Assembly (NCBI RefSeq): GCF_964204645.1
Contig: NC_134033.1
Coordinates: forward strand, 950,131-1,014,130
From: Tubulanus polymorphus
Lineage: Eukaryota > Animalia > Nemertea
Direction of reading: 5' to 3'
Length of the DNA stretch: 64,000 nt
Position 1 is the first letter of the stretch. The number at the start of each line of letters is the position of its first letter. Positions 5,417-41,924 of the stretch are shown piece after piece. Made by a program: the position numbers and the translations under genes. The notes below the pieces were generated by a model, which was not told where the DNA came from, searched no databases, and saw only the letters and a list, made by a program, of their open reading frames with translations.

Positions 5417-5895
5417 ACTGACTTATAAAGACTTACTGACTACTACTGAACATGACTACTGTGATTGAGTGACTGCTACAGAGTCACCAATACTATTACT
5501 ATTAATGACAAAATGACTACTACGAGTCACTGACTACAACTTAGTGACTACTATTAACCAAAAAATGACTACTACAACTGACTTATAAAGACTTACTGAC
5601 TACTACTGATCATGACTGCTGTGATTGAGTGACTGCTACAGAGTCACCAATACTATTACTATTAATAACAAAATGACTACTACGAGTCACTGACTACAAC
5701 TTAGTGACTACTACTAACCAAAAAATGACTACTACAACTGACTTATAAAGACTTACTGACTACTACTGATCATGACTGCTGTGATTGAGTGACTGCTACA
5801 GAGTCACCAATACTATTACTATTAATGACAAAATGACTACTACGAGTCACTGACTACAACTTAGTGACTACTACTAACCAAAAAATGACTAGTAT
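5417..5895. repeat. 3 x 160-bp tandem repeat built from ACT/GACT motifs
   Basis: ACTGACTTATAAAG recurs at 5417, 5577 and 5737. Confidence 0.9.
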
Positions 5896-6079: not shown

Positions 6080-6541
6080 CTACTCCCTGTACCCACGCCT
6101 AAACAAGACCGATTTTAAATCATGTAAAAGAGCCTTTGATCTATCCGAAGATAGAAGCTCCTCCCACGGTCCCACGGAACCGCGAGCCACCACCCGCACT
6201 TCGGCGCGGCATCGGTCGCTGGACAGAACTCTGTCCAGCGCCGAAACCGGGGCAGCGGCCAACGGCTCCACGGGGGCAGGAGGAACCCCTCTTACCTCCT
6301 CAACCTCCACGACCATCTCCTCTTCTACCGGTTCCGGCTCCGGCTCCGGCTCCGGGACCGGTTCAAACACCGGTTCCGGTTCCGGCTCCGGCACCGGCAC
6401 CGCCTCCACCACCTCCGGAACTACCACGACGCCGATCTCCTCCCCTCCGCCACCGCGTCGCTCCCCCTCGGGAGGCGCCACACCACCGCGACGAACCGCC
6501 GGACGGCGTCGTCTTCGATGCCGAGCGGTGCGCGTGCCCGT
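6080..6541 (-). CDS. Terminal exon: Arg-rich stretch, Pro-Glu repeats, helical C-terminus
   Basis: ttttgcag acceptor at 6542; ORF 6080..6565 in the track; phase-0 join to exon 6873-7108. Confidence 0.8.
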   Translation of the reverse strand, partial: TGTRTARHRRRRRPAVRRGGVAPPEGERRGGGGEEIGVVVVPEVVEAVPVPEPEPEPVFEPVPEPEPEPEPVEEEMVVEVEEVRGVPPAPVEPLAAAPVSALDRVLSSDRCRAEVRVVARGSVGPWEELLSSDRSKALLHDLKSVLFRRGYRE

Positions 6542-8065
6542 CTGCAAAAAAAAGAAAACATTCATTTACTAAATGATCGGTTGAAAAGTGATTTTTTACA
6601 GAAAATTTTCGGATCAGTAACCGAGCTGAAATAATGAAACAATTGATTACATATAAACAAAGAGATAAATCGTCGCGATCTGGGAAACAATATTCTAAAG
6701 GGTTAGAAAATAAAGCAAAAAAAAAAATGACGATGGCTCGCTGAAAATGAAAGTATTATTAAAGAAAAGATATTATAAGTGATTCATAAAAACTGTTCGT
6801 GTGAGAGAAATTCATTCGAAATCAAAACTGAGAGAAATATAAAAAAACAGTTAATGTTGAGATGATGCTTACCTCCCGTAACTCCCCCTCCCACAGCCGC
6901 CCGTCCACGCGACGGGACCACCTCTGTGCAAGAGGGTGCGGCTGCCGGAGGGTCCGCTGCCTAGGGCGCCTATCCGGGGAGGCAGCAGCTGGAACGGGGT
7001 CTGCCAGCTGGTCATCCAAGACAGGACCAAGGTTCAAGTGAAAGAGGTCTATGGCCTCTTTCACGTCCTCCGGACCATCCTCCACCGTCTCAATTAATAT
7101 TGGTTCCACTGTAAAATATAAAATAGAAAGAAATACATTAACCATCAGGAGAAACAATTAATATATCAAGGGCGGATCCAGTCCCCCGCCTTTAATATCT
7201 TCAGGTGCCCTCAAGATATTTTTAGGAATTTCTTTTTCCATTTTATAAAGAAAGATAAAGTATTCTCTCATGATGGCTATCGAATAGCCTCGTGCAACAA
7301 AATTTCAAAATTTTCTGGGGAGAAACACTTAAGACCCCTTTCATCCCTTCACGAGTGCTCATGTGCCCTTCAGTAAACCTTCCAAAAATCCTGGCTCAGC
7401 CCTTGTAGATTTACAGTGAACCCAGTGTAGCTAGTAATCTCATTAATACAAAATGGCTGACTTTCCACTTGAAGTGTGATTGGTTGCCAATAATTTGTGA
7501 CATCATCATGCAGCAGAATGTGGGATGCGGAAAGAATACAATATCAGTCTCGATGAGTGACATTGATGGGCTGGTTGAGAATTTAGGGGTTGTCGGGACA
7601 GGGTTACTACAGTACAGCACAGAAGTAACTAAACATTGTATCATTGTATTGTTCAGTCACATGAACAAATAAATAGGTGTCATACCATCAGCGAACCATC
7701 ACTTAACCATCAGGTGAACCCCTGCCATAACCGCAAACCATGATTCATGATGATTTGAAAATAATTCTAAATGGTAGGCATGGAAACTTGTTAAAATTGA
7801 TCTAGTTCATAAAATGCAGTCTATTTTCTCTGATTCAAATCAGTTCAAGAAGACTTTTTTGGCAATGCTTCAATTAACAGCGTAAAATGGATGCAAAAAC
7901 GATGGTTTATTCAGACCGCGCGGTTTCACTGGTCGTATTTAAACCAAATTTGATGCGGTATGTGTTTAAAACAATGAGCGACATATGGTATATGGAGTAT
8001 ATTACTTCATGCCTTGCCAAACACTAATTACTTACTCACCAAATCACTCAATTAACCTGTTCTTA

Positions 8066-8118
<53 letters not shown>

Positions 8119-11100
8119 ATATATATATCCGTTTTCAGTCAATATCTCACACCTGACGATGATCTCTAGGGTGAGATCGAAACGTCGTGTTCTTATGTTT
8201 TAGATTGTTTCCATAAATAAATTCTCGATTTTAGAATTCTTTTAATTTGTAAATAAAGTTGGTTTTTATCTTATTAACCCTTTCAGTGCTGACTGATCAA
8301 TACCCTATAGTGCTGGAGATAATTTGAAAATTTTGAAAAATTCCACCCAAGTGTGTTGAATAACGGGAATAGCACTACAGTGCGTCTACACCACGGCGCG
8401 GTGTATCGTTAGTTACTGATATTTCACGGTGTCTGAAAATGGTTGACGCCACACGAAAATAAATAGGCTTCTGTTATACAGAATTCTGTTGTAAACAGAA
8501 AGGGAACAATGATCTCGTTTTTCGATTTCAATTATTTCTAGGATGTACCGTCAATAAGACCCGGGGCTTGATGAGGCAGTGGCTGCGTTACTGTGGCAAG
8601 CGAGGATCAGCTAGTGGTTACTCCTCAATTACCGTGCTTCAATTTCGTCGACACTTCCCGATTGAACTGTAGCCGACTCATCGCTTTATCAATACGCGAA
8701 AGTTCACGATTGGTAGAACACTATATCCGTGTTGACGCGATGAGGAGAGAATCCCACAATGATAATAAAAAGTCCGAAAATGAAACTTCGATATAGTCGA
8801 AACGTTGAAATAAACTACTATCTCGAAGTTTCATTTTTGGACTTTTTATTATCATTGTGGGATTCTCTCCTCAACGCGAAAGTTGCTCGAACAAAAATTC
8901 GTTTGATTATATTTGAATTTTGTAAGCGAAAATCGAGTTCGAAAATAAACTAATTTCATCGCGTATCAACGAGTGTATTTTTGCGCCATCTGTACGCAGC
9001 CAGTACCTTATTCAATGTACGTTGAGGATACTTAACACGAGCGGGGGGGGGGATGAAAAATGATGTGATCAGTGGAAAGAGAGAGGAGAGAGGTATAAAT
9101 GCAAAAAGTTGTACTTACATCGCGTCAAAAAATTAAGTAGATACCGCGGATCCGCGGCGATATTCCGCCTTATCTCTTCGATGACTGTAAAATAAATAAA
9201 TGAGAAAAATTATTAGTATTTCATTAAATCATGGACGATCAATAGGAGTTTTACGACGTGGACAATACAGTCAAAGTCCGTTATACTGCCGCCATACTCC
9301 ATCAGGAGTGACATGATTTTGGGCATTTTAACGTGCTGGATCCATTTCCATAAATGAGTTAACTCTGATCTCAGAATCTAGTTCTACATTTGCGAGAGTT
9401 AATTCTGAACTCAGGATCCAGTTCCACAGATGAGTTAGATTTAACTCTGAACACAGAATCCAGTGCTACAGTTACGAGTTAAAGTTAACTCTGAACTCAG
9501 GATCCAGTTCTACAGTTACGAGTTAAAGTTAACTCTGAACTCGGGATCCAGGACCCAGTTCCACAGTTGTGAGTTACAGTTAACTAAATTAATCATCAGT
9601 TATCAACAGTAAGGCGCTCAGTAACATCTTTCATATTTCTGTTCAAATCAGAGACAAATTCAGTATTTCTTGTCATAAAATAGTAACAAATACCGAAAAT
9701 CAGTAACAGTTTGGGCAGCTCTGCTAAAAATGTCTGGCTACAAACGGACATATCTAAATAGGATCATGAATATGTGTAGACTTACCATTTTCCGTCGCAT
9801 CGACGGCGGGGGCGGCAGCTGCATTTTCTGCCTATAATATAATAACAATCATGATGTTAAGGTTTAAGAAAACAACAAAAAAATTTGTCAAAATTTATGC
9901 AGTTTTTACTAGCGTTTCGATAACACGAATCGTAATTAGAGAGATAATGGGGCCAATTCCCTATATGAAATCAAAAGCTGAAATAGAGCCTGCAAACAAG
10001 AGCATTTCAAGAGCTCAACTAATGCAGCGCAAAGTTTCCAAACAAACCAAGAAATCACAATTTCAAAGTTTTTCTTGATTTCTCTTTATAGTACATTCGC
10101 CGTTTATGTATAGCAGTTCCGGTCCATTGGATAATCCTTTCATCATCGCTTTCATGAAATTTGAACAGTAGGGAACTGGCACCCCAGCTATCCCTTCAGA
10201 TGGCACCGCTTAGGTATGTGAGACAATCTAATGGGACAGAAAGTGAATTTCAGAGACGTCGTCTGCGCGACAAGTCGTCGTCAAATTAGAGCATCGATAT
10301 TTTTTCGCGCATCTCTTATTGTATTAATAGTGAGCACTGGATCATATCATTACGGTTAAAAATACCCGACTATTTGATATCTCTAATTTGAGTAGTTTTC
10401 ACCTGAATATATGACAGCGCAAGGGCTCTAATAACTTACTCTTCGGCGTCTCAGCCGCGGCGATCGCCTCAGCGGCGGTATCTCGTCTCTCTGGAAAAAA
10501 CAAAACAATCAACATTGATTAAATCATCGAAACATTAAATGATTTCTTACTGATTGGAGAATTCGGTATCAGAATAGCTCGGTAGGACCAGAGAGATTCA
10601 GGGATTCTATATGTGAATAGCTCGGTAGGACCAGAGATTCAGGGATTCTATATGCGAATAGCTCGGTAGGACCAGAGAGATTCAGGGATTCTATATGTGA
10701 ATAGCTCGGTAGGACCAGCGAGATTCAGGGATTCTATATGTGAATAGCTCGGTAGGACCAGAGAGATTCAGGGATTCTGTATGTCTTCCTGTTCATTGAC
10801 GTGTCAGTTATGATCAACACATTCAGTGTATTTGATACATTATAATTATTTTCACTTATAGTTCAAACTTACATCAGCTTGCGGCGGCGGCGGCGTCGCA
10901 GGTGTTTCAGTCTAAAAAGTAAAAAAACGATATTTCCATTGGTTATAAAAACATGAAAATGATTCATTTCAACTTAATATAATAAAACTTGGTTCCACAG
11001 TTCAGGACCCAGTCCCACAGTTACAGAACCTGGCTCCGCAGTTCTGGACCCAGTCCCACAGTTACAGAACCTGGCTCCGCAGTTCTGGACCCAGTTCCAC

Positions 11101-14100
11101 AGTTTGAAGTTATGATCTAGTAAAGAGTTTCCGATGCTGGATCCTAGTTTTCCAGCCAATGGTATTCAGTTAGTTCCGTGCGATGGTCATCAAGCCGATT
11201 GTCATAAATTTCTAGATCTCTCCCTGTCCCGCCGCCCCAGAATTAGGTATTTTTACTTTTTCTTTGGTTTCGATTTTTTGGTGCCACGAGATCCAAAGCA
11301 GAAGAATTCTACACTATTTTAATTCTTTTTCCGATGCAGATTTTGAAAACAATAAAATATCCTCATAATCATTAGTGAACCACAATGATAATAATCTACA
11401 GGACTTAAAACAGGAAATAATGGTCAAGTCTTCATGAATAACCATGAACTGTGGGTGCAGAGACGCGAAAATCACTTGAAAAGTGGTTCGAAATGGAAAC
11501 ATTTAAAAATTTGTCAGTTATTACCATAGTTTATCATTGTTACAATGGTGGTTGTCACCTATGTTGAGGATTTACCGCTAGGGGCAACATTGAAACCCGG
11601 TCTATGAAATCGGGCCACGGTTGAGGATTTACCCCTAGGAGAAAATGATGTGGTCTATAAAACCCTGCCCAGATTATCAATAAACTTATTTGAAATTAGC
11701 TTCACTTAAAATGATTTGACTCAAATCAAACTTACTTTGATTGGTCTGACGCGTGCCCGTTTAGGGCTAACGGGGTCCTATAAAATAAAAACAAGTTGAA
11801 ATCAACATCCAGAATTTTCAAACATATTTCTGAAGGAAATCTCAATTTCAGATTATCTTAATAATCTTTGGTGAGCCACGAAAATGATAATCTACACAAC
11901 TAAAAAATGGAAATGAATAACCATGAACTGCAGGTGCAGAAACGACAACACCACTTGCAAAAAGGGCTTCAACAAACTCTCCACAATCACAAGAGGCACG
12001 TACTACCATCGCGAAAATCTTGTGCCTTTTTTTCCATGCCCAAAATAGATGTTCAAGCCACTTGGAAAGTGGTTTTTTTCGCATCGACAAACTCTCGTCG
12101 CAATCACAAATCATACTTGTAGTAAGCTTAAACTTTCACAAGATCCCGTCGGCAGGCGGACAGATGGAGAGACAGGCGGACAGACGGAGAGACAGGCACA
12201 CAGACGAACGGACTGTAAAATGATTTGATGAAATTCAAACTCACCGATGCCGGTACCTCGAGCTTCCTCTTCTATAAAATAAAAAATCAACTCTAGTTTA
12301 ACGACGTCAACAAAAATTCAGACATATTTCATCTGCAGTCGTTTGTGTTCAACTGTAAATTCAATAGAAATGTTCACAATATTTACCGGCACATTCACGC
12401 ACGTGTGGAATTCATTTCTCTACATAAAAAGAAAAACAAGAGCTCAATTTAGCATTTATGAAAATCAGAATAAATTATCTCGAATCTCGCATTTTTTTAA
12501 TAGCTTGGTTGACAGGGTAGACTATTGAAATATCATTTCGGAAAATTTAAAAAAAAAAGAACTCGCTCAGCGCGATAAACACAGTTTTTGAAGGAAGAGG
12601 GAACGATCGATAGGGCAATATACATATGTCCAAAACAATGATCCTTGGAAAGTTCGAATTCGGCACACAAATGTGATCAAAAAAAGAATAAACGCGCGGT
12701 TTTCAATTTTTTCATCATTCAAGCCGGGATTCTCATTCGGCGAAGGTGAAAAACTTTTTTGCTCGTTTTCCACTGAATTTGTTCCACGGATAGGAGTAAA
12801 AAAAAATTCTACTTTTGTTTGACTTTTCTTCAAATTTCGGGAGGCGGTTCCCGTAAACCAAGCTATTTAAGAAAAAGCCTCATCTGGTGAACCATCAACA
12901 ATAGTTATTATTACGTTATAGGTTGTTACTAATGATCGGATTTATGAGAACCACAACGGTATAGTGTACATTATGGAATAAAGTTCAAGTTTTTGTCAGT
13001 AGATGGCAGGCAGGTGGTATTTATAAAGTGACTGGGTGTCAACATGTGTAACTGAAATTGTCTATTGTAAACTTACGTCAATTTGCACAATACGCGCGAT
13101 TTCCGATTCCTAGAAATGTAAAGAAAAAAAATTCTGAAATCAAGTTTTGAATAACTATACCACGGATCAAAGATTCCATGATCTAAATTCTTAGTTGACC
13201 CTCGATTTAGAGGCTATTTTGAGGATAATTGAACCGATGGATGCTGCGTGACATGATTTCAATATTCTACTAACTCGGTCTGAAGAATATTCACATCGAT
13301 ACAAAACTGTGACCGAGCCGCAACTTTTAAACATTCTTAGTTTCACTTAAAAACATTGCTTCACGCTATTATCAATACCAATTTTACGAATAATATGAAC
13401 TCGGTAAGATGAATATTCGCATCGATACAAACTGTGACCGAGTGAGACTACTTTCAAACACTCTTTAGATATAACTGGCTTCAGCTGTGATTAATTTAGG
13501 ACCGAAGATACTACTCTATATAGCTTAATCAGTAGCGGATCCAAACTAGATTCCATTGTATTCCGGAATATAGTCAGAATAACATTTTTTTTTTTAAAGT
13601 AACTCGATCCAACAGAATGTCCCAGATACAAGGAAATTAGAACATATTTCAAAATTCTTATTGGTTAGGACCCCTAAACTGCGGCAGCTGCAGCGGTCAG
13701 GCAAAAAATATCTTTAAGGAATATAGCCAAATTCACCAGCCCCCCACGGAACTGCCCCTAAGTAATGACATTTTATAATTGAACCCATGATACCGTATAG
13801 CGGCAGCAAACAGATCGGTCACAATTACCAGTGTTTATGTTTTCCAACAACAAATAAGCTAGCAAAAACTAGGTGCCTTTAGCCTACGAGCAAAATTGGT
13901 CGTAGCTTTAGCCAAGTTTGACCTTGGTGGAGATATGCTATGGGATCTCTTAGAACATGGATAATTCAGCAGGAAAATCAATATCAGATTATAATAATCT
14001 GGTGAACTACGAAAATAATTATCTTTTACAACTTACGATAATGGTAGGAGCCTCGGGCTCCGGCGGCGGCGGCTCTGGGAAATCATCATTCTAGTAATCA

Positions 14101-17100
14101 AAATAACATGAAATATCATGAAAAATTCTAGCTAACCCTAAAAGCGAGTATATATGGAGCCACCCACTAATGAAAGGGATGGCTCCAAATTCACTGAGAA
14201 CGAGTAGGCGATCAAAAGGATATTTACCCAAAGGTCGTCGAATAAATTGATGTCCTATAAAAAAGAATACAAAAAATTTATTACGATAAAACGTACGTAT
14301 GTTTTTGGTAAATGACACTTACTGATCACAAGTGACATATGGTCACGATAGTATCACAATTGCTTGCCAGTGAGGCTAGGCGTTCACCAGAGCCAAGTTT
14401 CATAGATGTTGGGAAAAAATAATACCAGCTGGGATCATTTCGAAATTTTTCAGTTATTACCAAGGTTTTCATTATGAAGTTGTCACCTATGTTGAAGATT
14501 TACCTATAGGCAACCAACAGGGCTGCCAACCTCTGAAAAGTGCTATCAGTAACAAATTGTAATATGAAAATAAATGTTCAAATCAATCAGTAATCAACAG
14601 TAAGACCCTCAGTTAGATCTTTCATACTTCTCATATGCATCGAACAAAACAAATCAGTATTTCTTGTCATAAAAGAGTAACAAATATCGAAAATCAGGAA
14701 CAGTTGGCAACTCTGGGTAACATTGATATCCGGTTTACAAAATCGGGCTCAGGTTGAAGAAATACCTCCAGGGTATTATTGATATACAGTCTATGAAACA
14801 GGGCTAAGGTTATCAATATTTAACATCGATATCGAAAATGATTTAATGAAATTGAAACTTACCTCGTCACGCGGAATCTTCGGCGGGCTGACAGGTTGCT
14901 GTAAAATATTTTTAAAAAAGTTGAAATCAACATTCAGAATTTTGATACACATTGATAATAATCTACACGACTTAAAACAGGAAATAATGGTCAAGTCTTC
15001 ATGAATAACCATAAGCTGTGGGTTCAGAGACGTGAACATCACCGACCGACCGACCGACCGACCGACCGACCGACCGACCGACCGACCGACCGACCGACCG
15101 ACCGACCGACCGACCGACCGACCGACCGACCGACCGACCGACCGACCGACCGACCGAGGGTAGACCACTTTTTTTCCTGATTTTGTAGTATTAAGAATTT
15201 ATAAATCCCCTGTGTTTTCCAGGATTTTGGTAAAAATCTATCAAATTCCCCAATCTTTCTGATTCAATGAGATTGCCAGGTTTTCTAGGACATTAGCACC
15301 CTTGAATTGCTGAACAATGCCTATACCACTGGCGATTGTGAGATCCTATCTATGGACGAAAAGACAGATTGAAAGTAATAACGCGAGAACGATTCGATAG
15401 AATTCAAACTGACCTCGTCGACGGATCGGCATCGTCGCTTTCTGGTGACCTATAAAATAAACGAGCAACATTTAGATTTAATCATTTTTCATTTTCAAGT
15501 TCATGATCACGTGTAGTTCGGACATGGAAAGCATTTCATGAGAGAAATTGAGTGGAGCCGATTTAAGACTGCGAGGAAAGATATCAGTAATGTCAGTGAT
15601 GAGCGAAAACTAAAAACATGGCCAAAACTTACTTCTTTCGTTGTTGTTATTGTTGTTTGTTTGCACTGATGCCATGAAAGAAAAAAAGAGAATTAATTTT
15701 AGTTTTGTTATTTTATGTTCAGTAGCACACGTAGGTATCAATATACGTAATAAATGAGTTCTAAGCGACGGATGCCTCGTTATAGATATTGTTTTGATTC
15801 TGTATCGTTATTTAATAAAACGAACAGGAGAATTTTTATGACTTTGTTCCCGGTATGAAATACATTGGCTGTCAGATAGAAATGAACACGACAGAAAATC
15901 CATGATACAGAAAAATGCTGACTTACTTCCTTCGGTGGTGCTGCTGCTGTTGGTTTCTGTTGCAATAAAAGAAAGAAAATTCAGTAAGTTTTTTTTCTTA
16001 TATTTCATATACAGCAGCAAACGTTAATAAACACAGTAGACATAAAAACTGGACAGGTTTATATAGATATCTGTATCTGAAAAATGATTTTGATGTCATT
16101 AGCATAAATATCTTACATTAAGTTAAGTGCAATTCCTGAGTGCTAATGGATTAAAGTTGATGTTAAGACAGGATCATCTACGCGGGTATACATGGGAAAC
16201 GAATGACGCTTAATTATAAAATTGAACTTACTCGTGCAGGAATGGCCGCTGCCACTGCTGGATCTGTTGGTTTCTGTTGCAATAAAAGAAAGAAAATTCA
16301 ATAAGTTTTTTTTTTTTATATTTCATATTCAGCAGCAAACATTAAACACAGAAGACACAAAAACTGGGCAGGTTTAATATCTGTGTCTGGAAATCGATGG
16401 AAATCGCAAAAAATAATTGCCCATAGGCCGAGAGGTTTACCACAGCCTTATGAAATGCTTATATCAGATAACGAAATAGGGATGTAAAGTGTAAGGTGCG
16501 AGAAGTTTCGGTCTCGGTTAGAGAAATGAACGTAATCATAAAATCGTAATTATAAAATAGAAACTTACTCGTGCAGGAACGGCCGCTGCTGCTGCAGCTG
16601 TTGTTGTTGTTGTTGGTTTCTGCTGCAATAAAAGAAAGAAAATTCAGTTTTGTTTTAAATTTCATATTCAGCAGCAAGCGTTAATAAACACAGTAGACAT
16701 AAAAACTGGACAGGTTCATATAGATATCTGTATCTGAAAAATGATTTTGATGTCATTAGCATAAATTTCTTACATTAAGTTAAAATCAAACATGCCACAT
16801 GGTAAATCATTTTGAAGGGAATCGAACTCAGATTAAATTCTGTAACTTTTGACAAAATTCTGATGAAAAGCTCTTTAAGAATCGATTGTTATATTATTTG
16901 ATGATCATTGGTTTACATATATCTGTTGGTTAATATTATCAATGAACTTGTGGTCCAGTCGCCAATCCCACGCGAAAAATGATTTGGACGCTTGATAATC
17001 AGACTTATTTAATATTCAACGCCCCCTGGTGAAAATATACAAAAACCGTTGACCTTGAAACTCGTCACTATCATAGAAAATGTCGCTAGTGAACAGATGG

Positions 17101-20100: not shown

Positions 20101-23100
20101 ATCAGCGAACGTTTTACCGAACAAGGAAGTATTTCGCAAATCGATATATGACGTCACGCGCAACAGCGCCAGTAATGAAATCACGCTTCATGAGGCCAGG
20201 GGGCTGGTGGAAGCGAGTTCGGGAGTGATACCGGACCCCTGGCAAGCGTTATATTACAAAATGGATAAGCGAACATTCACAATTGTAATTGTTATTTTGA
20301 ATTGCTCCAATATTGATGACGTAGCGCACATTGACTCACACAAAACCATAGGCGTCCCCGAGGGGGTGCAGGGGTAGCGGACCCTTTTCAAGATAGCTAA
20401 CTTCTCAAGTTAACATGTAATCAATGTTCAAGATTTTTCTTGCCAATTTGACTTAAGTCCTTTAACTCTAAGTGATTCATTTAGAGCCTGGAAAACGTCT
20501 CTAAAGCCTCAAATTTAAAAAAAAGTTTTTTGGGGGAGGCCCCCCAAACACCAGACATTGTGCTTGGATGCTGGATTGATGCTTATTCGAACCCCGTATG
20601 AAAATTCCTGGGGACGCCTATGAGAACCTGTTTTAAATAACGCACAGGTATGAATGTATATGAACATCGTTGTAATTCCGGTTTTTACGGCATCAAAAAA
20701 GTTGCGATATTCGCTTCGCTATTAACACTCCCTCCCGTTAAATAATACAGTCGAATTACCAAAAAATTGCATCAAAAGATTGAATCGTGAGAGCATCTCA
20801 AAAACGACATTTCAATAAATTGTCGTTAAGCCCTTGGGTTGTTTATCCTATACCTGAAATTTAAGGAGTTAGCAAATAAATAGGTCGCTGAGCTATAATT
20901 AATTGGAGAGGCGCAGTGGCCAAGTGGACTAAGCCGCCGGTCACTGGTCTCATCAATCCAGGGTTTATAGGTTCAAACCTTTGTGACGACAGAGTTTCTT
21001 AGTCGAATGTTTTTCTCTGGTCTCTTAAACAACGAATCCACTTATAATGCCATGTGTGGCGCTTAGCGTTTTGAGGCTCTTAAAAAGAGCTATAATTCGT
21101 GCAAATTAGATCATTTTTCAAAAAATTGTTACCAATCTTTTCTAAGGGTCAGTCATACCCTAGAAACCTTTCAATTAACATTAAGCTCTATCTCTTACAG
21201 TTTTCACTCTATGGAGCTCGAAAGTTTCTATTGATTTTCCTACTTTTATGTTAACAATGATGGGCACTCTGAGTGTTTTTTTTTATCAAATCACCCGTGA
21301 GTGCTGAAAGAGTTATGCCCTTGGATGATATATACTGGGAGGAGGGTTGATCCGACGTGACTCCTTAACTCATTTCCACCCAAACACGTTCTCGTATGTT
21401 CGTTATCTCCCATCACATTCCTGCCAAAACCGTACTGGCAAAATGGTTGGCTTGTTTCTTAACTCAAACCCGTACTGATACCGTTGGCTTGATTCTTAAC
21501 TCAAAACCGTACCGATACGGTTGGCTTGTTTCTTAACTCAAAACTGTACCGATACGGTTGGCTTGATTCTTAACTCAAAACCGTACCGATACGGTTTGCT
21601 TGATTCTTAACTCAAAACCGTACCGATACGGTTGGCTTGATTCTTAACTCAAAACCGTACCGATACGGTTGGCTTGGTTCTTAACTCTAACGATAGATGG
21701 CGAATTCATCGCACAACACCAGTTAGTTTAATGCCTTTTACTACTAAACAAACTCATCAGTTGTTCTATACAGTGTGCGAGTGACATCATCTATTGAAAT
21801 GGGGGCTGAACACGCATGAACGAGCATATATTCTGCAAAATACTCCCTCTGCACTGGTTATCGCTACAGATTTTATCACTCTTAGAAGAAATGCCGCTTA
21901 TTTTACATGAAAATGCAAGACCAGATCAAAGATATAAAACAAATTTGATGAGAAGATATCTCTTCTTGTTTTTGTTTTATGAATCTCTGAAAAACACGGA
22001 AATCCTGGCAAAACGCAGCATTGCCTGAAAAATAGGCGTGGCAGGCAAAGAGTTACGAATGTTCTTCATTTATATTCCCGCTTTTTTCTCATATACCCTA
22101 ATTATTCACTCGCCTTAAGCCCGCCGCACCCGGCATAACATTTGTTTCGCCAAAACAGAAAACACACTTTTCAGAACACGTTTTGCCCACAAACAATAAA
22201 ATGTTCAACGGACACGACATTTTGCTGTTCGGCGTTTTGTGTTTTGCCTTCCCCGCACATCTCACATTTTCATCTCAAGTCTCAACATATTACAATTGAT
22301 AACCAGCCAACAGAACGGATACATCTAAACTTACTTCGATGTCTGGGGACGCCAACGTGGACCTCGTTCCAGTGTGATGCTGTAAAAGAATAAAATTCAT
22401 TAATACAAAGCCTAGGAATTGGTAAATCAACCATGGAAAACATCATCTTGTTTTGCAGAAAATCTACCAGGGGAAAGAAAAAAACGAGTCGGAATCTATT
22501 CAATCGTTGCGCTTATGAAAATCAGCACCAGTTTATGGGCATAAAAATGTGCGCCAAGAATTGAATTTGATGACCAATACAAATAAACCAAAAATAGACA
22601 GGTTTGATATCTGTAACCGAATTGGATTTAGAGCCGCCTTTTTTCAGGTCAAAAACGATAAGTTACGAAGGGAATCGAACTCCGATTAAATTCTGTAACT
22701 TTGATGATAATTCTGACGAAAAACTCATAAGAATCGGTTGTTTCAAGGTAACAGAAGAATTAATACTTACTGCCTTTGCTGCTGTTTGTTTACGCTGATG
22801 ACATGAAAGAAAAAAAGAGAATTCATTTTAGTTTTGTTATTTCACGTTCACACGTTAAATACAGTAAATATAAATACATCAATAAAAGAGATACATAAAA
22901 TATATGCACATATATCCGTGAGCAAATGCTTCCAGATTTTACTGTGTGCGCTAATATTATATAAAAAAAACTTGATTATAAAATAATTCTAAGTGACGGG
23001 AATTTATTTCATTGAAAGCAGGATTATTTTCATGACTTTGTTCCCGGTATGAAATATACGATGAAAATCACAAACAAATCATCGTCTGTCAGAAAGAAAT

Positions 23101-26100
23101 AAACACGACTAGAAATTCCATGATACAGAAAACTTCTCACTTACTTCTGGTGCTGTCGTTTTTGTCGTCGTCGTCGTCGCTGAATTCTGTCGCAATAAAA
23201 AAAAAAGAGAATTCATGAATTTCTTGCATTATTTCATATTCAGTAGCACACATTTAACACAGGAGATCATATTATAATTAAAACAAGAGACAAGTTTTAT
23301 ATCTGTATTTGGAAAAACCCTGATATTTCTGTATTCGTTTGTTTTAGGGTTTTATTTAAACAATATAAAGTCCATTAAACAGAAAAATTCAAACTTACTG
23401 TATTCGTCGCTGTTTGTCTGTTCTGTTGCAATAAAAGAAAAGAGAATTCATTAATTTCTTGCATTGAAACTCTGATCTCTGTAACTTTGATATTTCTGTA
23501 TTCGTTTGTTTTACAGTTTGATTCAAACGATATAGAGTCCATGAAACAGAAAAATTCAAACTTCTGTTGTCGTTGCTGCTGCTGCTGCTGCTGCTGCAGC
23601 AAACTGTCGCGATGAAAGAATAGTAATTAATTGCATTGTTATTTCATATTGAGTAGCACACATTTAACAGAGATCATTATTAAAACGAATACCAGACAGG
23701 TTTAATATCTGGAAAAAGATTTCATCAGAGTAAACTTGTTACAATGAGAGAAAACCAAAAACACCACGCGATAAATCAGTTTGATAATTCCTTTTATCGG
23801 GATATTTGCACTTTAAAAATGACAATTGTAATTATTATCATTACTATTATCGTTATTACTACGAGTTTGATGATAATTATGAACTATATGCGCAAATATA
23901 AGCGTATGTGTAAGTGAGCGCGCGCACAAACTGAAGACGAAATCAGTTACAACTTGCTTAAAGAGTTATGAAGTTTCAATGACTCTCAGCGAAAATGGTA
24001 GATATCATATTCCACCGAGGAGATTAATAGAAAACTTACAAAATGAATTTCCGCTTCTACTGTTATCTAGAAAAGAGAATTAACATTCATATCTATAAAA
24101 ATCATTCATTAAATGATCAATGAATCTAAGCGCCAGTTTTATGGAGACCAATGTTTACTTTAATAAATCTGGGTTAACTTGATTAAAAGTGAATTCAGTT
24201 AACTGAGCACGGGTTAAACATAATACCAGTCTAACCGGCTTCAGAGGACCAGGTTAAACAAAACAGGTTTACATAAAATGATATCATAAAATCTAAACTT
24301 ACTGGCGGCGGAATTTCCTCCAGGACTTCTGGCTGTTGGAAAAGAACAATAACATTCACATTCAGGTCAAAAACGATAAGTTACGAAGGGAATCGAACTC
24401 CGATTAAATTCTGTAATTTTGATGATAATTCTGTTGAAAAACTCATAAGAATCGGTTGTTTCAAGGTAACAGAAGAATTTCTACTTACTGCCTTTGCTGC
24501 TGTTTGTTTACGCTGATGACATGAAAGAAAAAAAGAGAATTCATTTTAGTTTTGTTATTTCACGTTCACACGTTAAATACAGTAAATATAAATACATCAA
24601 TAAAAGAGATACATAAAACATATGCACATATATCCGTGAGCAAATGCTTCCAGATTTGACTGTGTGCGCTAATATTATATAAAAAAAACTTGATTATAAA
24701 ATAATTCTAAGTGACGGGAATTTATTTCATTGAAAGCAGGATTATTTTCATGACTTTGTTCCCGGTATGAAATATACGATGAAAATCACAAACAAATCAT
24801 CGTCTGTCAGAAAGAAATAAACACGACTAGAAATTCCATGATACAGAAAACTTCTCACTTACTTCTGGTGCTGTCGTTTTTGTCGTCGTCGTCGTCGCTG
24901 AATTCTGTCGCAATAAAAAAAAAAGAGAATTCATGAATTTCTTGCATTATTTCATATTCAGTAGCAAACATTAAACACAGGAGATCATATTATAATTAAA
25001 ACAAGAGACAAGTTTTATATCTGCATTTGGAAAAACCCTGATATTTCAGTATTCGTTTGTTTTAGGGTTTTATTTAAACAATATAAAGTCCATTAAACAG
25101 AAAAATTCAAACTTACTGTATTCGTCGCTGTTTGTCTGTTCTGTTGCAATAAAAGAAAAGAGAATTCATTAATTTCTTGCATTGAAACTCTGATCTCTGT
25201 AACTTTGATATTTCTGTATTCGTTTGTTTTACAGTTTGATTCAAACGATATAGAGTCCATGAAACAGAAAAATTCAAACTTCTGTTGTCGTTGCTGCTGC
25301 TGCTGCTGCTGCTGCTGCAGCAGCAAACTGTCGCGATGAAAGAATAGTAATTAATTGCGTTGTTATTTCATATTGAGTAGCACACATTTAACAGAGATCA
25401 TTATTAAAACGAATACCAGACAGGTTTAATATCTGGAAAAAGATTTCATCAGAGTAAACTTGTTACAATGAGAGAAAACCAAAAACACCACGCGATAAAT
25501 CAGTTTGATAATTCCTTTTATCGGGATATTTGCACTTTAAAAATGACAATTGTAATTATTATCATTACTATTATCGTTATTACTACGAGTTTGATGATAA
25601 TTATGAACTATATGCGCAAATATAAGCGTATGTGTAAGTGAGCGCGCGCACAAACTGAAGACGAAATCAGTTACAACTTGCTTAAAGAGTTATGAAGTTT
25701 CAATGACTCTCAGCGAAAATGGTAGATATCATATTCCACCGAGGAGATTAATAGAAAACTTACAAAATGAATTTCCGCTTCTACTGTTATCTAGAAAAGA
25801 GAATTAACATTCATATCTATAAAAATCATTCATTAAATGCTCAATGAATCTAAGCGCCAGTTTTATGGAGACCAATGTTTACTTTAATAAATCTGGGTTA
25901 ACTTGATTAAAAGTGAATTCAGTTAACTGAGCACGGGTTAAACATAATACCAGTCTAACCGGCTTCAGAGGACCAGGTTAAACAAAACAGGTTTATATAA
26001 AATGATATCATAAAATCTAAACTTACTGGCGGCGGAATTTCCTCCAGGACTTCTGGCTGTTAGAAAAGAACAATAACATTCACATTCAGGTCAAAAACGA

Positions 26101-29100
26101 TAAGTTACGAAGGGAATCGAACTCCGATTAAATTCTGTAACTTTGATGATAATTCTGACGAAAAACTCATAAGAATCGGTTGTTTCAAGGTAACAGAAGA
26201 ATTAATACTTACTGCCTTTGCTGCTGTTTGTTTACGCTGATGACATGAAAGAAAAAAAGAGAATTCATTTTAGTTTTGTTATTTCACGTTCACACGTTAA
26301 ATACAGTAAATATAAATACATCAATAAAAGAGATACATAAAATATATGCACATATATCCGTGAGCAAATGCTTCCAGATTTTACTGTGTGCGCTAATATT
26401 ATATAAAAAAAACTTGATTATAAAATAATTCTAAGTGACGGGAATTTATTTCATTGAAAGCAGGATTATTTTCATGACTTTGTTCCCGGTATGAAATATA
26501 CGATGAAAATCACAAACAAATCATCGTCTGTCAGAAAGAAATAAACACGACTAGAAATTCCATGATACAGAAAACTTCTCACTTACTTCTGGTGCTGTCG
26601 TTTTTGTCGTCGTCGTCGTCGTCGCTGAATTCTGTCGCAATAAAAAAAGAAGAGAATTCATGAATTTCTTGCATTATTTCATATTCAGTAGCAAACATTA
26701 AACACAGGAGATCATATTATAATTAAAACAAGAGACAAGTTTTATATCTGTATTTGGAAAAACCCTGATATTTCTGTATTCGTTTGTTTTAGGGTTTTAT
26801 TTAAACAATATAAAGTCCATTAAACAGAAAAATTCAAACTTACTGTATTCGTCGCTGTTTGTCTGTTCTGTTGCAATAAAAGAAAAGAGAATTCATTAAT
26901 TTCTTGCATTGAAACTCTGATCTCTGTAACTTTGATATTTCTGTATTCGTTTGTTTTACAGTTTGATTCAAACGATATAGAGTCCATGAAACAGAAAAAT
27001 TCAAACTTCTGTTGTCGTTGCTGCTGCTGCTGCTGCTGCAGCAGCAAACTGTCGCGATGAAAGAATAGTAATTAATTGCGTTGTTATTTCATATTGAGTA
27101 GCACACATTTAACAGAGATCATTATTAAAACGAATACCAGACAGGTTTAATATCTGGAAAAAGATTTCATCAGAGTAAACTTGTTACAATGAGAGAAAAC
27201 CAAAAACACCACGCGATAAATCAGTTTGATAATTCCTTTTATCGGGATATTTGACCTTTAAAAATGACAATTGTAATTATTATCATTACTATTATCGTTA
27301 TTACTACGAGTTTGATGATAATTATGAACTATATGCGCAAATATAAGCGTATGTGTAAGTGAGCGCGCGCACAAACTGAAGACGAAATCAGTTACAACTT
27401 GCTTAAAGAGTTATGAAGTTTCAATGACTCTCAGCGAAAATGGTAGATATCATATTCCACCGAGGAGATTAATAGAAAACTTACAAAATGAATTTCCGCT
27501 TCTACTGTTATCTAGAAAAGAGAATTAACATTCATATCTATAAAAATCATTCATTAAATGATCAATGAATCTAAGCGCCAGTTTTATGGAGACCAATGTT
27601 TACTTTAATAAATCTGGGTTAACTTGATTAAAAGTGAATTCAGTTAACTGAGCACGGGTTAAACATAATACCAGTCTAACCGGCTTCAGAGGACCAGGTT
27701 AAACAAAACAGGTTTACATAAAATGATATCATAAAATCTAAACTTACTGGCGGCGGAATTTCCTCCAGGACTTCTGGCTGTTAGAAAAGAACAATAACAT
27801 TCACATTCATTAGAATTATTTGAAAAATAAGCATCTGGGGGCGGTTGCACGTCAATCGAGACTTAAGTCCGAAAGTGGTCTTAAATCTTAAGACTGGTCT
27901 TAAGTTGTTAGATTGGCTATAGAAACCAAGTTGGTCTTAGACTGATCTTAAGTCAAAACCCTGACTATGGAACCGGCCCCAGAAAATGTTTCAGTTTTGA
28001 ATATTGATTGTAACATCAAATGATAACCGGTCCCGGGTTCAATTCCACATTTAATTCATTATTCCATCTGTATCCTGGATGGTTAGTGAGGTGGAGTGGA
28101 CGGTATCTTTGATGGGTTGGTATGAACGCCAACACCAGGGGGAGTGGGGGCGGGGGATTTAAATCTAGCTCCGATATATCAATGAAATAGTGCGCACTAT
28201 CTCAAAAATATCGATGACGTAGTGCACATCTACTCAGGTAAGTATACTAGGTATCAATGTAGATACAGACATATTATTGGAACAAAAAAAAATGAATACT
28301 TACTATCTGCTTTCGTTTTGGAGCCATATTTCTAGAAAACAAAATAGAGACATCATAAACATTTGAGCGACGACACTTATCATCATTTGAAAATTGGCAT
28401 ATCGATTGTAAACAAATCCGCCAGATGACAGATCTGTAATCAGTCAGTGCTATGGAGGGTAGCCCTTGGGTTTTAATAGAAACAATTTCAGAGACAACAC
28501 ATTAACAACTTTCGTCAGCGAATTCCCTTGAGAATCATCTGTATCAACCAGTTACAGATGATTCTCAAGGGAATTCGCTGACGAAAGTTGCACTTGGTAA
28601 ATACACAAAATATAAATGAATTACCCAAATATTTCCTTGATTTTATGAAAATTTCCGAAATTTATTTTTGGAAATATTTCCAAACTAGGAATTATCATTT
28701 CAAAATTCCAAAGTTTTTCCCAATTTCTGCGTTCTGTGGGAACCATGAGTATGCCTGTTTATCTAAGTGCTGAGGTGGAATTTTTTAAATCTTTACATCT
28801 CCAGCACTTTCGAGTATTGATTAGTTCAATGAAATGCTTAACGCACCTTAAAATTTCAACAAAATATTTTGTTTAGGGTTTCATTCAGTAAACCATCAGG
28901 CCATACATGCAGTTCAACAGTTTTGGACGCAATGGGATACCGGCAAGGCTAATGAATAAGACCCTAAAGATATTTTCTGTTGAAGACATTTTGAGGGCAC
29001 CAACGATTCCCTACCATTTTTCATTACCAGTTGAAATTTGGTTTATTTCAGAATGTTTTAAATCTAAAAAACTGATCAAGAAATGTGGAACTGGGAGGTC

Positions 29101-32100: not shown

Positions 32101-33258
32101 AGGGTTTGACTAGTTCGCCATCTAGTGGATACTATGAATTATGAGTGTCTATCGGATTAAATTGTCCGCTGGCAGATGAGCTTGGCAAGAAAGTTTTTCA
32201 AATCGATTCTGAAAATATTTACATTTAATTCAGTTTATCTCAGCAATAAATTTTTTGTGAAACTGACCCCTGGACCTAATTAGACTAGGCCCTACGTGAA
32301 GAAAATCTTACTCTAAAATCGCTTTAAAATTATTTCAACACGGGTGCATATTGAATCGATTTAGGATTAATTTCGTTTTGGGAAAATGTACCCAGGGTCG
32401 TATATTTCCTATAGGCAGCTATCAGGATCCAGTTTCACAGTTCTGGACCCAGTTCCACAGTTGTAAGTTAGAGCTAACTGAGTTCATTTTCAATGTTTTA
32501 ACTACAATCAATTTTGAACTCAGATTTAGAGTTCAGGTTTAAAGCAAATTGAAATGAACTAATTTTAACTCAAAGTAAACCAAAGATGAAACCGAGATCG
32601 AATGCTGATTTTCAGATGCAGCTCTCAATTCAGAATAATTCTTATCAAAATAATTTCTGATCTTTAGAACTAATTTCACACCCCTTAACACTGGACAAAA
32701 ATGAACTCAGCTAGCTCTACCACAACCTGGAAGCTTTGTTTATTTTCTACCCTTAGCTACGTATAAAGCTCGGGTCTAAAATCAAAACTTCACTTCAAAA
32801 ACTTAGGCCTAGTTTACAAAAAATGGCCACCGGGCTGAAGAGGTAGGAGGGAGAGGGATCGCCGCCGACGGGGCTTTGTTTCTTCAGTTTTCTTCTGCCG
32901 TTCGTTCGACCATCTCATTTTTTCAACCAGTCGCTGCTGTGATGATATTCTCCTGCAGAAATTTGAGATCTCAAAAAGATCGGCCTCAAGAATATCGGCG
33001 GCAATCAGGATTGAGGAGCGGGATGGGTGCGGAAAGTGGCGCCATTTCAGACGACGGAATATCGAGTTAAAACATCGTCTGAAATATCAGTTTACATCAA
33101 TAGATGATCGTCAAAAACTATTTCTACGCCGTCCAAACGACCTCTTCTGTGATATTGGCCGTAAAATCTACCGCAAAACGATCCGATTTAACGGATGTAA
33201 AGAGATTTAAATCGAAAAAAATCACCAACACGTTTACTTACATCGCTCGATTTAGCAT
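6080..33258 (-). CDS. Multi-micro-exon gene, ~706 aa low-complexity basic/Pro-Ala-Thr-rich protein with one KH-like segment; function unknown, probably nuclear
   Basis: Exons in transcript order, each AG/GT-bounded with a pyrimidine tract: 33242-33258 (tentative), 28304-28331, 27748-27777, 27485-27511, 26844-26867, 26587-26631, 26213-26236, 26027-26056, 25764-25790, 25117-25140, 24863-24904, 24489-24512, 24303-24332, 24040-24066, 23399-23422, 23145-23186, 22771-22794, 22335-22379, 18830-18910, 18343-18462, 17561-17587, 17434-17460, 17154-17201, 16569-16619, 16232-16273, 15927-15956, 15633-15665, 15414-15449, 14863-14898, 14037-14090, 13077-13109, 12245-12271, 11736-11777, 10873-10911, 10440-10490, 9786-9831, 9119-9184, 6873-7108, 6080-6541. 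Joined they give 2121 nt with no internal stop, ending at TAG 6080-6082. Phases are consistent at every junction. Confidence 0.8.
7167..7405. mobile_element. hAT-like MITE, degenerate
   Basis: Imperfect TIRs CAAGGGCGGATCCAG / CTGGCTCAGCCCTTG; flanks TATAT/TAGAT (4 of 5 match). Confidence 0.55.
8065..8128. repeat. (AT)n microsatellite
   Basis: Direct observation. Confidence 0.95.
8149..8190 (+). ncRNA. Minimal type I hammerhead ribozyme (Penelope-associated type)
   Basis: Stem I ACAC(8149-52)/GTGT(8187-90); core CTGACGA (8153-59); stem II GATCTC/GAGATC with loop TAGGGT; GAAA (8179-82); palindromic ACGT in place of stem III; cleavage triplet GUC (8184-86). Confidence 0.75.
8274..8430. mobile_element. 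One end of a piggyBac-like MITE, inverted copy of the family at 29674-30570
   Basis: TTAA-CCCTTTCAGTGCTGACTGATCAATA... is the reverse complement of 30435-30574. Confidence 0.75.
8736..8878. repeat. Near-perfect inverted repeat or foldback (~60-bp arms)
   Basis: GAGGAGAGAATCCCACAATGATAATAAAAAGTCC... pairs with ...GGACTTTTTATTATCATTGTGGGATTCTCTCCTC. Confidence 0.9.
9335..9590. repeat. Tandem copies of a dispersed GGATCCAGTTCCACAGTT...GAGTTAACTCTGAACTC repeat family
   Basis: About 40-bp units; the same family occurs at 10990-11105, 29085-29120 and 32425-32540. Confidence 0.7.
10570..10782. repeat. ~40-bp minisatellite, ~5 units, inverted homolog of 646-968
   Basis: GAATAGCTCGGTAGGACCAGAGAGATTCAGGGATTCTATATGT repeated. 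Confidence 0.95.
12501..12865. mobile_element. MITE with TAG...CTA termini; superfamily uncertain, Academ-like termini
   Basis: TIRs TAGCTTGGTTGACAGGG / CCCGTAAACCAAGCTA. Confidence 0.55.
15041..15156. repeat. (ACCG)n microsatellite
   Basis: About 29 perfect units. Confidence 0.95.
18343..18910 (-). CDS. Two larger exons (81 and 120 nt) encoding the only globular-looking segment, KH-like
   Basis: EIETVFELKLGTSLRASFQKTLTRKHP + QVIVDTPRVHAIVVVRGPKVAVDNCYEYAHELRDRLVAQE. VVVRGPxxAVxxxxxxxxEL resembles the last strand and helix of type I KH domains; no GxxG loop is present. Confidence 0.6.
19368..19860. mobile_element. hAT-like MITE with apparent 6-bp TSD
   Basis: TIRs CAGAGTTGCCACT / AGTGGCAACACTG; TATATT on both sides. 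Confidence 0.7.
20347..20622. mobile_element. hAT-like MITE
   Basis: TIRs CATAGGCGTCCCC / GGGGACGCCTATG; flanks AAAAC/AGAAC. Confidence 0.7.
20901..21086 (+). mobile_element. tRNA-derived SINE with 11-bp TSD
   Basis: A-box TGGCCAAGTGG (20917), B-box GGTTCAAACC (20970), short A tail, and direct repeat GAGCTATAATT at 20890-20900 and 21087-21097. Confidence 0.8.
21427..21690. repeat. 37-bp minisatellite with an internal hairpin (AACCGTA-CCGA-TACGGTT), ~7 units
   Basis: CTTAACTCAAAACCGTACCGATACGGTTGGCTTGATT repeated. Confidence 0.9.
22643..27809. repeat. 3 x ~1.72-kb near-identical tandem duplication, each unit carrying 5 (+1 weak) micro-exons
   Basis: TTCAGGTCAAAAACGATAAG recurs at ~22643, 24361 and 26085; track ORFs repeat at 23375, 25093 and 26820. 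Confidence 0.95.
27837..27981. mobile_element. Small palindromic MITE, PIF/Harbinger-like
   Basis: CTG-GGGGCGGTTGCA ... TGGAACCGGCCC-CAG termini; internal CTTAAG repeats. Confidence 0.5.
28304..28331 (-). CDS. Exon containing likely start or N-terminal NLS-like motif (N)MAPKRKQI
   Basis: ttttctag|AAATATGGCTCCAAAACGAAAGCAGATA|gtaagt; in frame with the upstream ATG exon 33242-33258 (MLNRA-I). Confidence 0.75.
28506..28590. repeat. Perfect hairpin, 38-bp arms, 9-nt loop
   Basis: CAACTTTCGTCAGCGAATTCCCTTGAGAATCATCTGTA-tcaaccagt-TACAGATGATTCTCAAGGGAATTCGCTGACGAAAGTTG. Confidence 0.95.
29674..30570. mobile_element. piggyBac-like MITE carrying a nested insertion
   Basis: TTAA at 29670-73 and 30571-74; TIRs CCCYTTCAGTGC. 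Confidence 0.8.
29826..30432. mobile_element. Tc1/mariner-superfamily (Tc2/pogo-like) MITE nested in the piggyBac-like MITE
   Basis: Perfect 25-bp TIR CCGTATTTTCCGGCCAATAAGCCGA; TA TSD; no transposase ORF. Confidence 0.85.
30851..31072. mobile_element. MITE with TAA TSD (Harbinger- or Zator-like)
   Basis: TAA-GGCTAAA...TTTAGCC-TAA; the empty site AGTGTAAGATATT is seen in the adjacent duplicate at ~30724. Confidence 0.8.
31147..31793. mobile_element. Foldback or MITE with ~55-bp imperfect inverted ends
   Basis: GCACATCAGGTGGCCTAGCTCAGTCAGTTTT (31168) vs AAAACTGACTGAGCTAGGCCACCTGATGTGC (31738). Confidence 0.65.
32818..32952 (-). CDS. Candidate optional 135-nt phase-2 symmetric exon (MRISSQQRLVEKMRWSNERQKKTEETKPRRRRSLSLLPLQPGGHF), or 5'UTR
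   Basis: tttctgcag acceptor and a weaker gtaaac donor; open and in frame between 33242-33258 and 28304-28331. Confidence 0.35.

Positions 33259-41883: not shown

Positions 41884-41924
<41 letters not shown>

Follow-up and report, generated by a model that had tools for sequence, protein, structure and literature searches.

The 64,000-nt stretch of the genome of the nemertean Tubulanus polymorphus analyzed here (contig NC_134033.1, positions 950,131 to 1,014,130; hereafter, the window) raises the question of whether a long series of very short exons, read on the minus strand from 33258 to 6080, forms a functional gene, how such a series could have arisen, and what it encodes. We propose, as the likely answer, that the series represents a single copy of a protein-coding gene that is restricted to its lineage, was recently amplified and encodes ~743 amino acids (aa) in ~41 exons; its product would be intracellular, probably nuclear and largely disordered. 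A micro-exon gene for a modular, probably nuclear protein had been proposed at this place in a first-pass annotation; the amplification of the gene in 42-kb blocks, the superfamily to which it belongs and its intron-less copies are new here.

In the window, which has the base composition of eukaryotic DNA (~38% G+C), minus-strand positions 28331-6080 accommodate a coherent model of 41 coding exons and ~743 codons, with a single continuous frame from the ATG at 28327 to the TAG at 6082-6080 that includes a phase change at a 46-nt exon. Most of the exons are very short (36 of 41 are no longer than 54 nt) and 39 of 41 are multiples of 3; GTAAGT accounts for 32 of the 40 donors, and all acceptors are CAG or TAG, with a mean pyrimidine fraction of 0.76. 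The 33 strong exons that had been listed between 27777 and 10440 are all present, multiples of 3, stop-free in frame 0 and of phase 0-0; 31 of them measure 24-54 nt, and the remaining two 81 and 120 nt. Three further poly-Ala exons in this interval are doubtful and may be dead: their donor is the degenerate GTTTGA because an ancestral GTAAGT lost a T, as seen against the homologous flank of the NRQT exon. Three tandem cassettes are followed by a 45-nt exon, the 81- and 120-nt exons and 15 exons of 27-54 nt down to 10440, and 3' of these lie exons of 46, 66, 236 and 462 nt. The 46-nt exon sets phase 1, the only frame in which the 66-nt exon is open, and the 236-nt exon returns the frame to phase 0. 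A strict exon scan (pyrimidine tract, AG, 12-60 nt, GTRAGT) returned 27 minus-strand candidates inside 6080-28340 and none on the plus strand there, compared with 2-3 elsewhere in the window and an average of 1.9 in shuffles.

The gene is not alone in the genome. The search for relatives that the first-pass annotation had recommended for the assembled protein was run exon by exon on the 267.8-Mb assembly, and it yielded both near-identical copies and a set of distant loci that we describe below. The 40-aa exon occurs in 11 places at 95-100% identity. From the 21-aa, 78-aa and last exons, ~9 complete copies can be counted, of which contig C11 carries six, C9 two and C8 one. Six copies (A-F) were fetched and, together with the window, make up a comparison set of seven. 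They are 94-99% identical to the window in exons and introns alike, the duplicated block extends over at least 42 kb (window ~1 to 42013), and every copy lies within 0.4-3 Mb of a contig end (copy F at C9:1.57 Mb). Partial, inverted or scrambled pseudo-copies accompany the full ones. The exons of the window copy, in transcriptional order and with their variation among paralogs, are as follows.

33242-33258, minus strand: 3' end of a 5' non-coding (or first) exon, donor GTAAGT at 33241; contains an in-frame upstream ATG (MLNRAIN-) in weak context
28304-28331, minus strand: likely start exon, 28 nt, MAPKRKQI, ATG at 28327 in the context AAATATGG
26213-27777, minus strand: cassette copy 1, with exons 27777-27748 (PEVLEEIPPP), 27511-27485 (ITVEAEIHF), 27048-27007 (poly-Ala, doubtful), 26867-26844 (NRQTATNT), 26631-26587 (NSATTTTTTKTTAPE) and 26236-26213 (RKQTAAKA)
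24489-26056, minus strand: cassette copy 2, with exons 26056-26027, 25790-25764, 25327-25280 (doubtful), 25140-25117, 24904-24863 and 24512-24489
22771-24332, minus strand: cassette copy 3, with exons 24332-24303, 24066-24040, 23603-23562 (doubtful), 23422-23399, 23186-23145 and 22794-22771
22335-22379, minus strand: 45-nt exon, HHTGTRSTLASPDIE
18830-18910, minus strand: 81-nt exon, EIETVFELKLGTSLRASFQKTLTRKHP, donor GTAATG; first half of the sole compact, non-repetitive mid-protein segment
18343-18462, minus strand: 120-nt exon, QVIVDTPRVHAIVVVRGPKVAVDNCYEYAHELRDRLVAQE; weak likeness to the C-terminal half of a vigilin KH domain
17561-17587, minus strand: 27-nt exon, TLKEKRKME
17434-17460, minus strand: 27-nt exon, RERKKKALE
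17154-17201, minus strand: 48-nt exon, MKAAAAAAAAKTAAAF; a tandem acceptor permits 51 nt, and paralogs have 42-57 nt
16569-16619, minus strand: 51-nt exon, KPTTTTTAAAAAAVPAR; a tandem acceptor permits 54 nt
16232-16273, minus strand: 42-nt exon, KPTDPAVAAAIPAR
15927-15956, minus strand: 30-nt exon, KPTAAAPPKE
15633-15665, minus strand: 33-nt exon, CKQTTITTTKE
15414-15449, minus strand: 36-nt exon, VTRKRRCRSVDE, donor GTCAGT; 33 or 36 nt across paralogs
14863-14898, minus strand: 36-nt exon, QPVSPPKIPRDE
14037-14090, minus strand: 54-nt exon, NDDFPEPPPPEPEAPTII; invariant in 6 paralogs
13077-13109, minus strand: 33-nt exon, ESEIARIVQID
12245-12271, minus strand: 27-nt exon, KRKLEVPAS, donor GTGAGT
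11736-11777, minus strand: 42-nt exon, DPVSPKRARVRPIK
10873-10911, minus strand: 39-nt exon, TETPATPPPPQAD
10440-10490, minus strand: 51-nt exon, RDEIPPLRRSPRLRRRR, final exon of the phase 0-0 run; paralog changes are 9 synonymous versus 1 non-synonymous
9786-9831, minus strand: 46-nt exon, AENAAAAPAVDATEN plus 1 nt, which sets phase 1; 46 or 52 nt in paralogs, and its acceptor is the only choice that leaves the next exon open
9119-9184, minus strand: 66-nt exon, (V)IEEIRRNIAADPRYLLNFLTR, phase 1-1
6873-7108, minus strand: 236-nt exon, (L)EPILIETVEDGPEDVKEAIDLFHLNLGPVL...RLWEGELRE; aa 22-78 conserved in the distant family at 46-53% identity
6080-6541, minus strand: 462-nt last exon, with an Arg-rich stretch, a PE-repeat stretch, a conserved C-terminal 66-aa module and the TAG at 6082-6080; a GTAAGA at 6295 is read through in the model

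Comparison of the seven copies provides most of the evidence that this model describes a real gene. Each exon retains its splice sites, a multiple-of-3 length and an open frame despite length differences, and neither frameshifts nor stops occur in the 23 non-cassette exons of any copy, with ~1.6-2.2 kb of coding sequence in each. KPT...PAR exons number 2-4 among the copies and large cassettes 2 or 3 (only 2 in paralog E), and individual exons exist in several in-frame variants (for example NSATTTTTTKTTAPE, NSTTTRTTAPE and NSATTTTTTTTTTKTTAPE, or VTRKRRCRSVDE, VTRKRRRSVDE and VTRKRCRSVDE). Of 28 unique indels in exons, 26 were multiples of 3, as opposed to 45 of 186 (24%) in the 200-nt intron flanks (P = 2e-14), and the two exceptions in exons are a +1/-1 pair 3 nt apart. 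Ratios of non-synonymous to synonymous substitution (dN/dS), computed by the Nei-Gojobori method in the predicted and the two shifted frames, stood, for the predicted frame, at 0.19 in the non-repetitive micro-exons and at 0.25 in the larger ones; the shifted frames gave 0.76-3.8. These intact frames, triplet indels and low frame-specific dN/dS values, together with intron-less copies fused at predicted junctions (see below), indicate that the locus is protein-coding and under selection on frame, splice sites and amino acids, which bears out the earlier view that a real micro-exon gene lies here. Paralog comparison by itself is enough to reveal selection on the reading frame and the sequence.

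Several observations weigh against this conclusion. The copies are young (1-5% divergence) and share descent, so that comparisons among them are not independent; exons are overall not more conserved than intron flanks (1.87% versus 1.46% divergence), which points to constraint that acts on the frame and on particular residues and not on the sequence as a whole; and Ala/Thr/Pro-rich exons have a dN/dS of ~1.9, implying that part of the protein is weakly or diversifyingly constrained or hard to align. No polyadenylation hexamer (AATAAA or ATTAAA) is present within 1.9 kb downstream of the stop (6082-4200, minus strand). Four sequencing runs, three of them DNA, gave no splice joints on 15160-19000, and the fourth, a possible RNA run of the species, gave no contig there. 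Some of these observations are also what would be expected if the locus were not a functional gene at all but a young non-coding or decaying repeat block in which the frame is kept by triplet repeats: no splice joint, polyadenylation hexamer or homolog was found, exons evolve overall no more slowly than introns, and tracts of poly-Ala or poly-Thr are naturally prone to slippage in triplets. However, the low dN/dS values come from exons that are not triplet repeats, seven copies have escaped stops and frameshifts, the C-terminal exons are matched at 45-53% aa identity by at least 34 distant open-frame loci, and truly degenerate copies, namely an array on contig C8 and window 78-1510, look different and carry frameshifts. 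We therefore hold a decaying repeat block to be highly improbable and retain the protein-coding reading.

Read-derived variants in 15160-19000 agree with coding constraint, being synonymous at 18433-18451, 18887 and 18890 and 3-nt deletions at 15430 and 15934, and they come at least partly from paralogs, for which reason we do not count them as independent coding evidence. A DNA contig from these reads joins 15507 to 18641 and matches a rearranged C8 paralog without the micro-exon block 15507-18157, which indicates that reads placed at 90% identity mix paralogs.

How did so many exons come to share one phase? The interval 27777-22771 consists of three tandem 1.72-kb cassettes, which supply 15-18 exons; each has five strong exons (PEVLEEIPPP, ITVEAEIHF, NRQTATNT, NSATTTTT(T)KTTAPE and RKQTAAKA) and one doubtful poly-Ala exon. 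Pairwise comparison of each exon with 130 nt of flank per side revealed ten exon types with 70-90% identical intron flanks (FAAA, NRQT, NSAT, RKQT, RERK, MKAA, KPTT, KPTD, KPTAAAPP and CKQT) and a second cassette group, recognized by its flanks, of QPVS, DPVS and KRKL; 13 more exons were assigned to two older cassette families. Some 13 independent exon lineages are left, all symmetric, for which random lengths would give a probability of (1/3)^13, or ~6e-7. Judged by these flanks, the array grew by repeated tandem duplication of cassettes made of an exon and its flanking intron, and the phase-0 run is unbroken because only symmetric exons duplicate this way without loss of frame. The statistical surprise of the run is thus largely explained by cassette duplication and not by 33 separate coincidences. 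The first-pass annotation had argued that the run was very unlikely by chance; the excess in the strict scan upholds that argument, but the events to be counted are the ~13 lineages and not 33 independent exons.

A transposon origin was considered and rejected, the window having no open reading frame longer than 251 aa and cassette DNA being confined to paralog loci, where it is no genome-wide repeat. Tandem copying of exon-intron cassettes lengthened the micro-exon array, and triplet slippage and the gain or loss of whole cassettes continue to remodel it; paralogs differ in module length and number and yet remain in frame because change takes these two forms. The paralogs thus demonstrate that changes in the DNA itself diversify the protein, and the locus is a clear natural example of a long disordered region built from tandem symmetric cassettes and triplet slippage, followed by 42-kb gene amplification.

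Intron-less copies bear on the predicted junctions. A tandem array on contig C8 (L027 4983-6634; G000:C8:13995582-13997233) has a period of ~724 bp and three degenerate copies (L027 4983-5191, 5707-5915 and 6419-6634), in each of which the 81-, 120- and 27-nt exons are joined directly; introns of 367 and 755 nt separate them in the window. Codons are colinear across the first junction (RKFKDITIDLP versus RKHP|QVIVDTP), and the frame runs on across the second. The units keep the intron end that precedes the 81-nt exon and lack a following donor; a 1-nt frameshift is present in two of the three. Precise loss of both introns through a spliced RNA intermediate would best explain this arrangement, and it indirectly validates those two junctions; the array looks like a partly processed copy that was later amplified.

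Whether the symmetric exons also diversify the product within a copy is a separate question. The first-pass annotation had suggested a combinatorial isoform generator, in which symmetric micro-exons are skipped in varied combinations to give many isoforms per copy. By arithmetic, any of the 33-36 symmetric exons can be removed without a frameshift, tandem NAGNAG-type acceptors are present at 17204/17201 and 16622/16619, the three poly-Ala exons with the GTTTGA donor are possibly included only sometimes, and transcripts of schistosome micro-exon genes (MEGs) do vary by exon skipping (PMC10526429). On the other hand, the 32 consensus GTAAGT donors among 40, with good pyrimidine tracts, fit constitutive inclusion at least as well, and the micro-exon dN/dS of ~0.19 implies that each exon is translated often enough for selection to act. 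The ~9 copies, which vary in how many cassettes they have and in their length, already provide diversity. We regard the isoform generator as possible but unlikely.

Composition was summed over exons, and searches were made exon by exon, with natural intron-less genomic copies as the only multi-exon sequences used. Five residues dominate the protein, A (15.8%), P (11.2%), E (10.9%), T (10.8%) and R (9.7%), whereas V makes up 7.7% and K 5.1%; it is highly charged (110 K+R versus 108 D+E) and has ~0.5% Cys. A short basic N-terminus, MAPKRKQI, is followed by a long low-complexity middle rich in Ala, Pro, Glu, Thr and Arg, which is almost entirely the product of 24-54-nt phase 0-0 exons and has several K/R clusters; a single compact segment of 67 aa, encoded by the 81- and 120-nt exons, lies in mid-protein, and a C-terminal part of ~125 aa completes the layout. 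Basic clusters (KRK, RKKK, RKRR, KRKL, PKRAR, RLRRRR and RHRRRRR) and S/T-P sites (SPKR, SPPK) are mostly conserved among copies. Inspection of MAPKRKQI, PEVLEEIPPP and ITVEAEIHF revealed no hydrophobic N-terminal stretch, nor is there a hydrophobic segment in any exon, consistent with the modular product without a signal peptide that had been predicted. Because of the basic clusters and S/T-P sites, our best guess is that the product is intracellular, probably nuclear and largely disordered; at the level of motifs, the S/T-P sites may also hint at regulation by cyclin-dependent kinases. The modules would act as short linear motifs and basic clusters, and the conserved C-terminal module would be the functional anchor of the family. 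RRSPRL, in the 17-aa exon that contains RRSPRLRRRR, and the MAPKRK start resemble the HMGN-type nucleosome-binding motif, RRSARLSA, a likeness that is only a lead.

This picture of the product has its own counterweights. Nuclear localization is predicted from motifs, and structure prediction returned low confidence: AlphaFold2 (AF2) models of a natural fused copy had a pLDDT of 64.5, disagreed among the five and were not KH-like, and the C-terminal 68 aa gave a helical, four-helix model at a pLDDT of 66.8, for which a Foldseek search of the PDB found no match (best E 6.3); neither model is used for any conclusion here. The Thr/Ala/Pro-rich modules would also suit a secreted or extracellular, mucin-like structural protein, in which they would be O-glycosylated spacers, if an upstream exon with a signal peptide had been missed; the 5' end was defined from sequence alone, and Thr-, Ala- and Pro-rich repeats change fast by slippage here, as they do in mucins. 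But the ATG at 28327 has a strong context, its exon is identical in all copies (MAPKRKQI is unchanged in 6 of 6 fetched paralogs) and charged residues come next; translation from the sole in-frame ATG further upstream would add the non-hydrophobic MLNRAIN; and many Arg/Lys clusters, the low Cys content and the lack of hydrophobic segments in any exon do not fit. A secreted mucin-like protein is accordingly a very unlikely alternative to the intracellular product that we prefer.

To what does the gene belong? At no fewer than 34 additional loci, open frames of 122-150 aa that lie ~1.3-1.5 kb apart match two parts of the protein at 45-53% identity, namely aa 22-78 of the 78-aa exon and aa 86-151 of the last one. 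The distant loci comprise ~18 on contig C6 (0.65-1.75 Mb, spacing ~31-35 kb), 10 on C3 (0.42-1.33 Mb) and 6 on C8 (15.07-16.31 Mb), and weaker matches to the C-terminal exons occur on C12; an open reading frame on contig C4 (L029) was dropped as unrelated to the domain. Defined by its C-terminal exons, the superfamily has at least 43 loci, and the arrays of the wider family are regular, with a period of ~31-46 kb. The C-terminal ~125 aa, encoded by the last two exons, are the only part common to the wider family and thus form the conserved core of a large lineage-specific family.

Outside the genome no relative was found, in keeping with the earlier suggestion of an undescribed family. Pfam searches of five larger exon pieces gave a low-complexity pseudo-match only, with no Ig, Fn3 or other domain, and those of four other open reading frames of the window gave nothing. 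A phmmer search of 1.84 billion protein representatives with the 78-aa exon returned two tandem-repeat artefacts only, the copy from the species itself being missing from that collection; neither the 40-aa exon nor profile A1 matched any PDB sequence, and the ESM Atlas yielded no usable match. Genes of this kind probably escape gene predictors and protein databases, as the 78-aa exon is unmatched, even in its own species, among 15 billion predicted proteins.

The best match of the 120-nt exon outside the family is a vigilin-like multi-KH gene on contig C7 (L028, G000:C7:5003500-5006500, minus strand), in which Pfam finds KH_1 at E 2.5e-22 and 3.8e-10; the exons of that gene at 1681-1577 and 1495-1288 begin and end inside KH domains. 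The match covers the C-terminal strand-strand-helix half of the domain, with 13 of 32 aa identical (41%; VVQIRGPKEDVDKCYKYLQKL versus VVVRGPKVAVDNCYEYAHEL), a genome-wide E of 0.037, a pairwise E of 6e-8 and an hhalign probability of 74%, and the two exons start within one codon of each other in domain position, both after a phase-0 intron. However, the KH_1 profile (PF00013) has no match at E ≤10 for the 40-aa exon or the natural fused copies, while the vigilin control open reading frames do match it, and the 81-nt exon (...KLGTSLRASFQKTLTRKHP) has no GXXG loop and no similarity to the N-terminal KH half of vigilin. The resemblance weakly suggests a KH relation, as a lead and not as membership.

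The architecture invites comparison with schistosome MEGs, which have 10-20 exons, 6-81 bp and typically 15 nt long and for the most part divisible by three, and encode small secreted proteins of less than ~190 aa with a constant N-terminal signal peptide (PMC10526429). Like them, the gene studied here is coded mostly in very short multiple-of-3 exons, with introns that range from 100 nt to a few kb, is easily missed by gene predictors, and belongs to a lineage-specific multigene family with low-complexity or disordered products and no outside homologs. Unlike them, it has no signal peptide, its ~743 aa are spread over 41 exons of mostly 24-54 nt, its product is basic/acidic and Arg-rich, three or four larger exons are conserved, and its ~9 copies lie in 42-kb segmental duplications. 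No similarity to MEG proteins was seen, Pfam being blank for the larger exons and the 78-aa exon having two spurious matches, and the micro-exon peptides are too short to be searched singly. Exon skipping is the hallmark of MEGs and would here be a prediction. The gene departs from the MEG definition in signal peptide and size and shows no sequence relation in these searches: it is MEG-like in architecture and not a member of the MEG family. Micro-exon gene architecture, it follows, is not confined to secreted proteins.

A second parallel is the PEVK region of titin, in which short same-phase exons, each a disordered module, were multiplied by exon-intron duplication; Pro, Glu, Val and Lys account for most of its residues, and the protein around it has Ig and Fn3 domains. 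The gene shares with it the same-phase short exons and a module number that varies without frameshift, and differs in the dominance of A, P, E, T and R, in the absence of Ig or Fn3 domains, and in being a gene of its own, ~27 kb long, where PEVK belongs to a giant muscle protein. A third parallel is offered by young ampliconic or subtelomeric families, in which multi-copy genes are carried in large segmental duplications: the gene studied here likewise has ~9 copies in blocks of at least 42 kb near contig ends, inverted partial pseudo-copies and, in its wider family, regular arrays.

We also considered a broader proposal, which we hold to be quite unlikely as a whole. It places the locus in a large lineage-specific superfamily (at least 43 loci) in arrays near chromosome ends, combining a conserved C-terminal module with fast-changing symmetric micro-exon cassettes, diversified between paralogs and by predicted exon skipping; the superfamily might then form a hypervariable nuclear or chromatin-associated repertoire, serving for example in germ-line conflict or self/non-self recognition, and a non-secreted counterpart, in another branch of the animals, of schistosome MEGs. 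If the wider family and its expression were understood, it could become clear why dozens of these genes are maintained in arrays close to the chromosome ends.

The duplicated surroundings of the gene are themselves complex. Window 78-1510, on the plus strand, is a scrambled inverted partial copy of the 3' region of the gene at 86-96% identity, with its pieces in the order 7004-6858, 11738-11320, 10784-10433, 6898-6861 and 9204-8997, and the same arrangement is found beside the other copies. Upstream of the gene, 34867-42013 recurs on contig C11 at 0.34, 2.90, 3.23, 3.73 and 3.77 Mb without matches to gene exons, and the ~180-bp unit of 41834-42013 forms a long tandem array at C9:1544529-1546832. 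A 43-bp tandem repeat (ACCGAGCTATTCACATATAGAATCCCTGAA...) occupies part of one intron of the gene (10572-10784) and, inverted, part of the partial copy (742-968); related 41-44-bp repeats occur at 9357-9551 and 10986-11104, and the presumed 3' untranslated region contains a tandem repeat of three 160-bp units (5417-5891). Finally, an element of ~320 bp at window 1660-1984 recurs dozens of times across many contigs at ~90% identity and is probably a miniature or short interspersed transposon.

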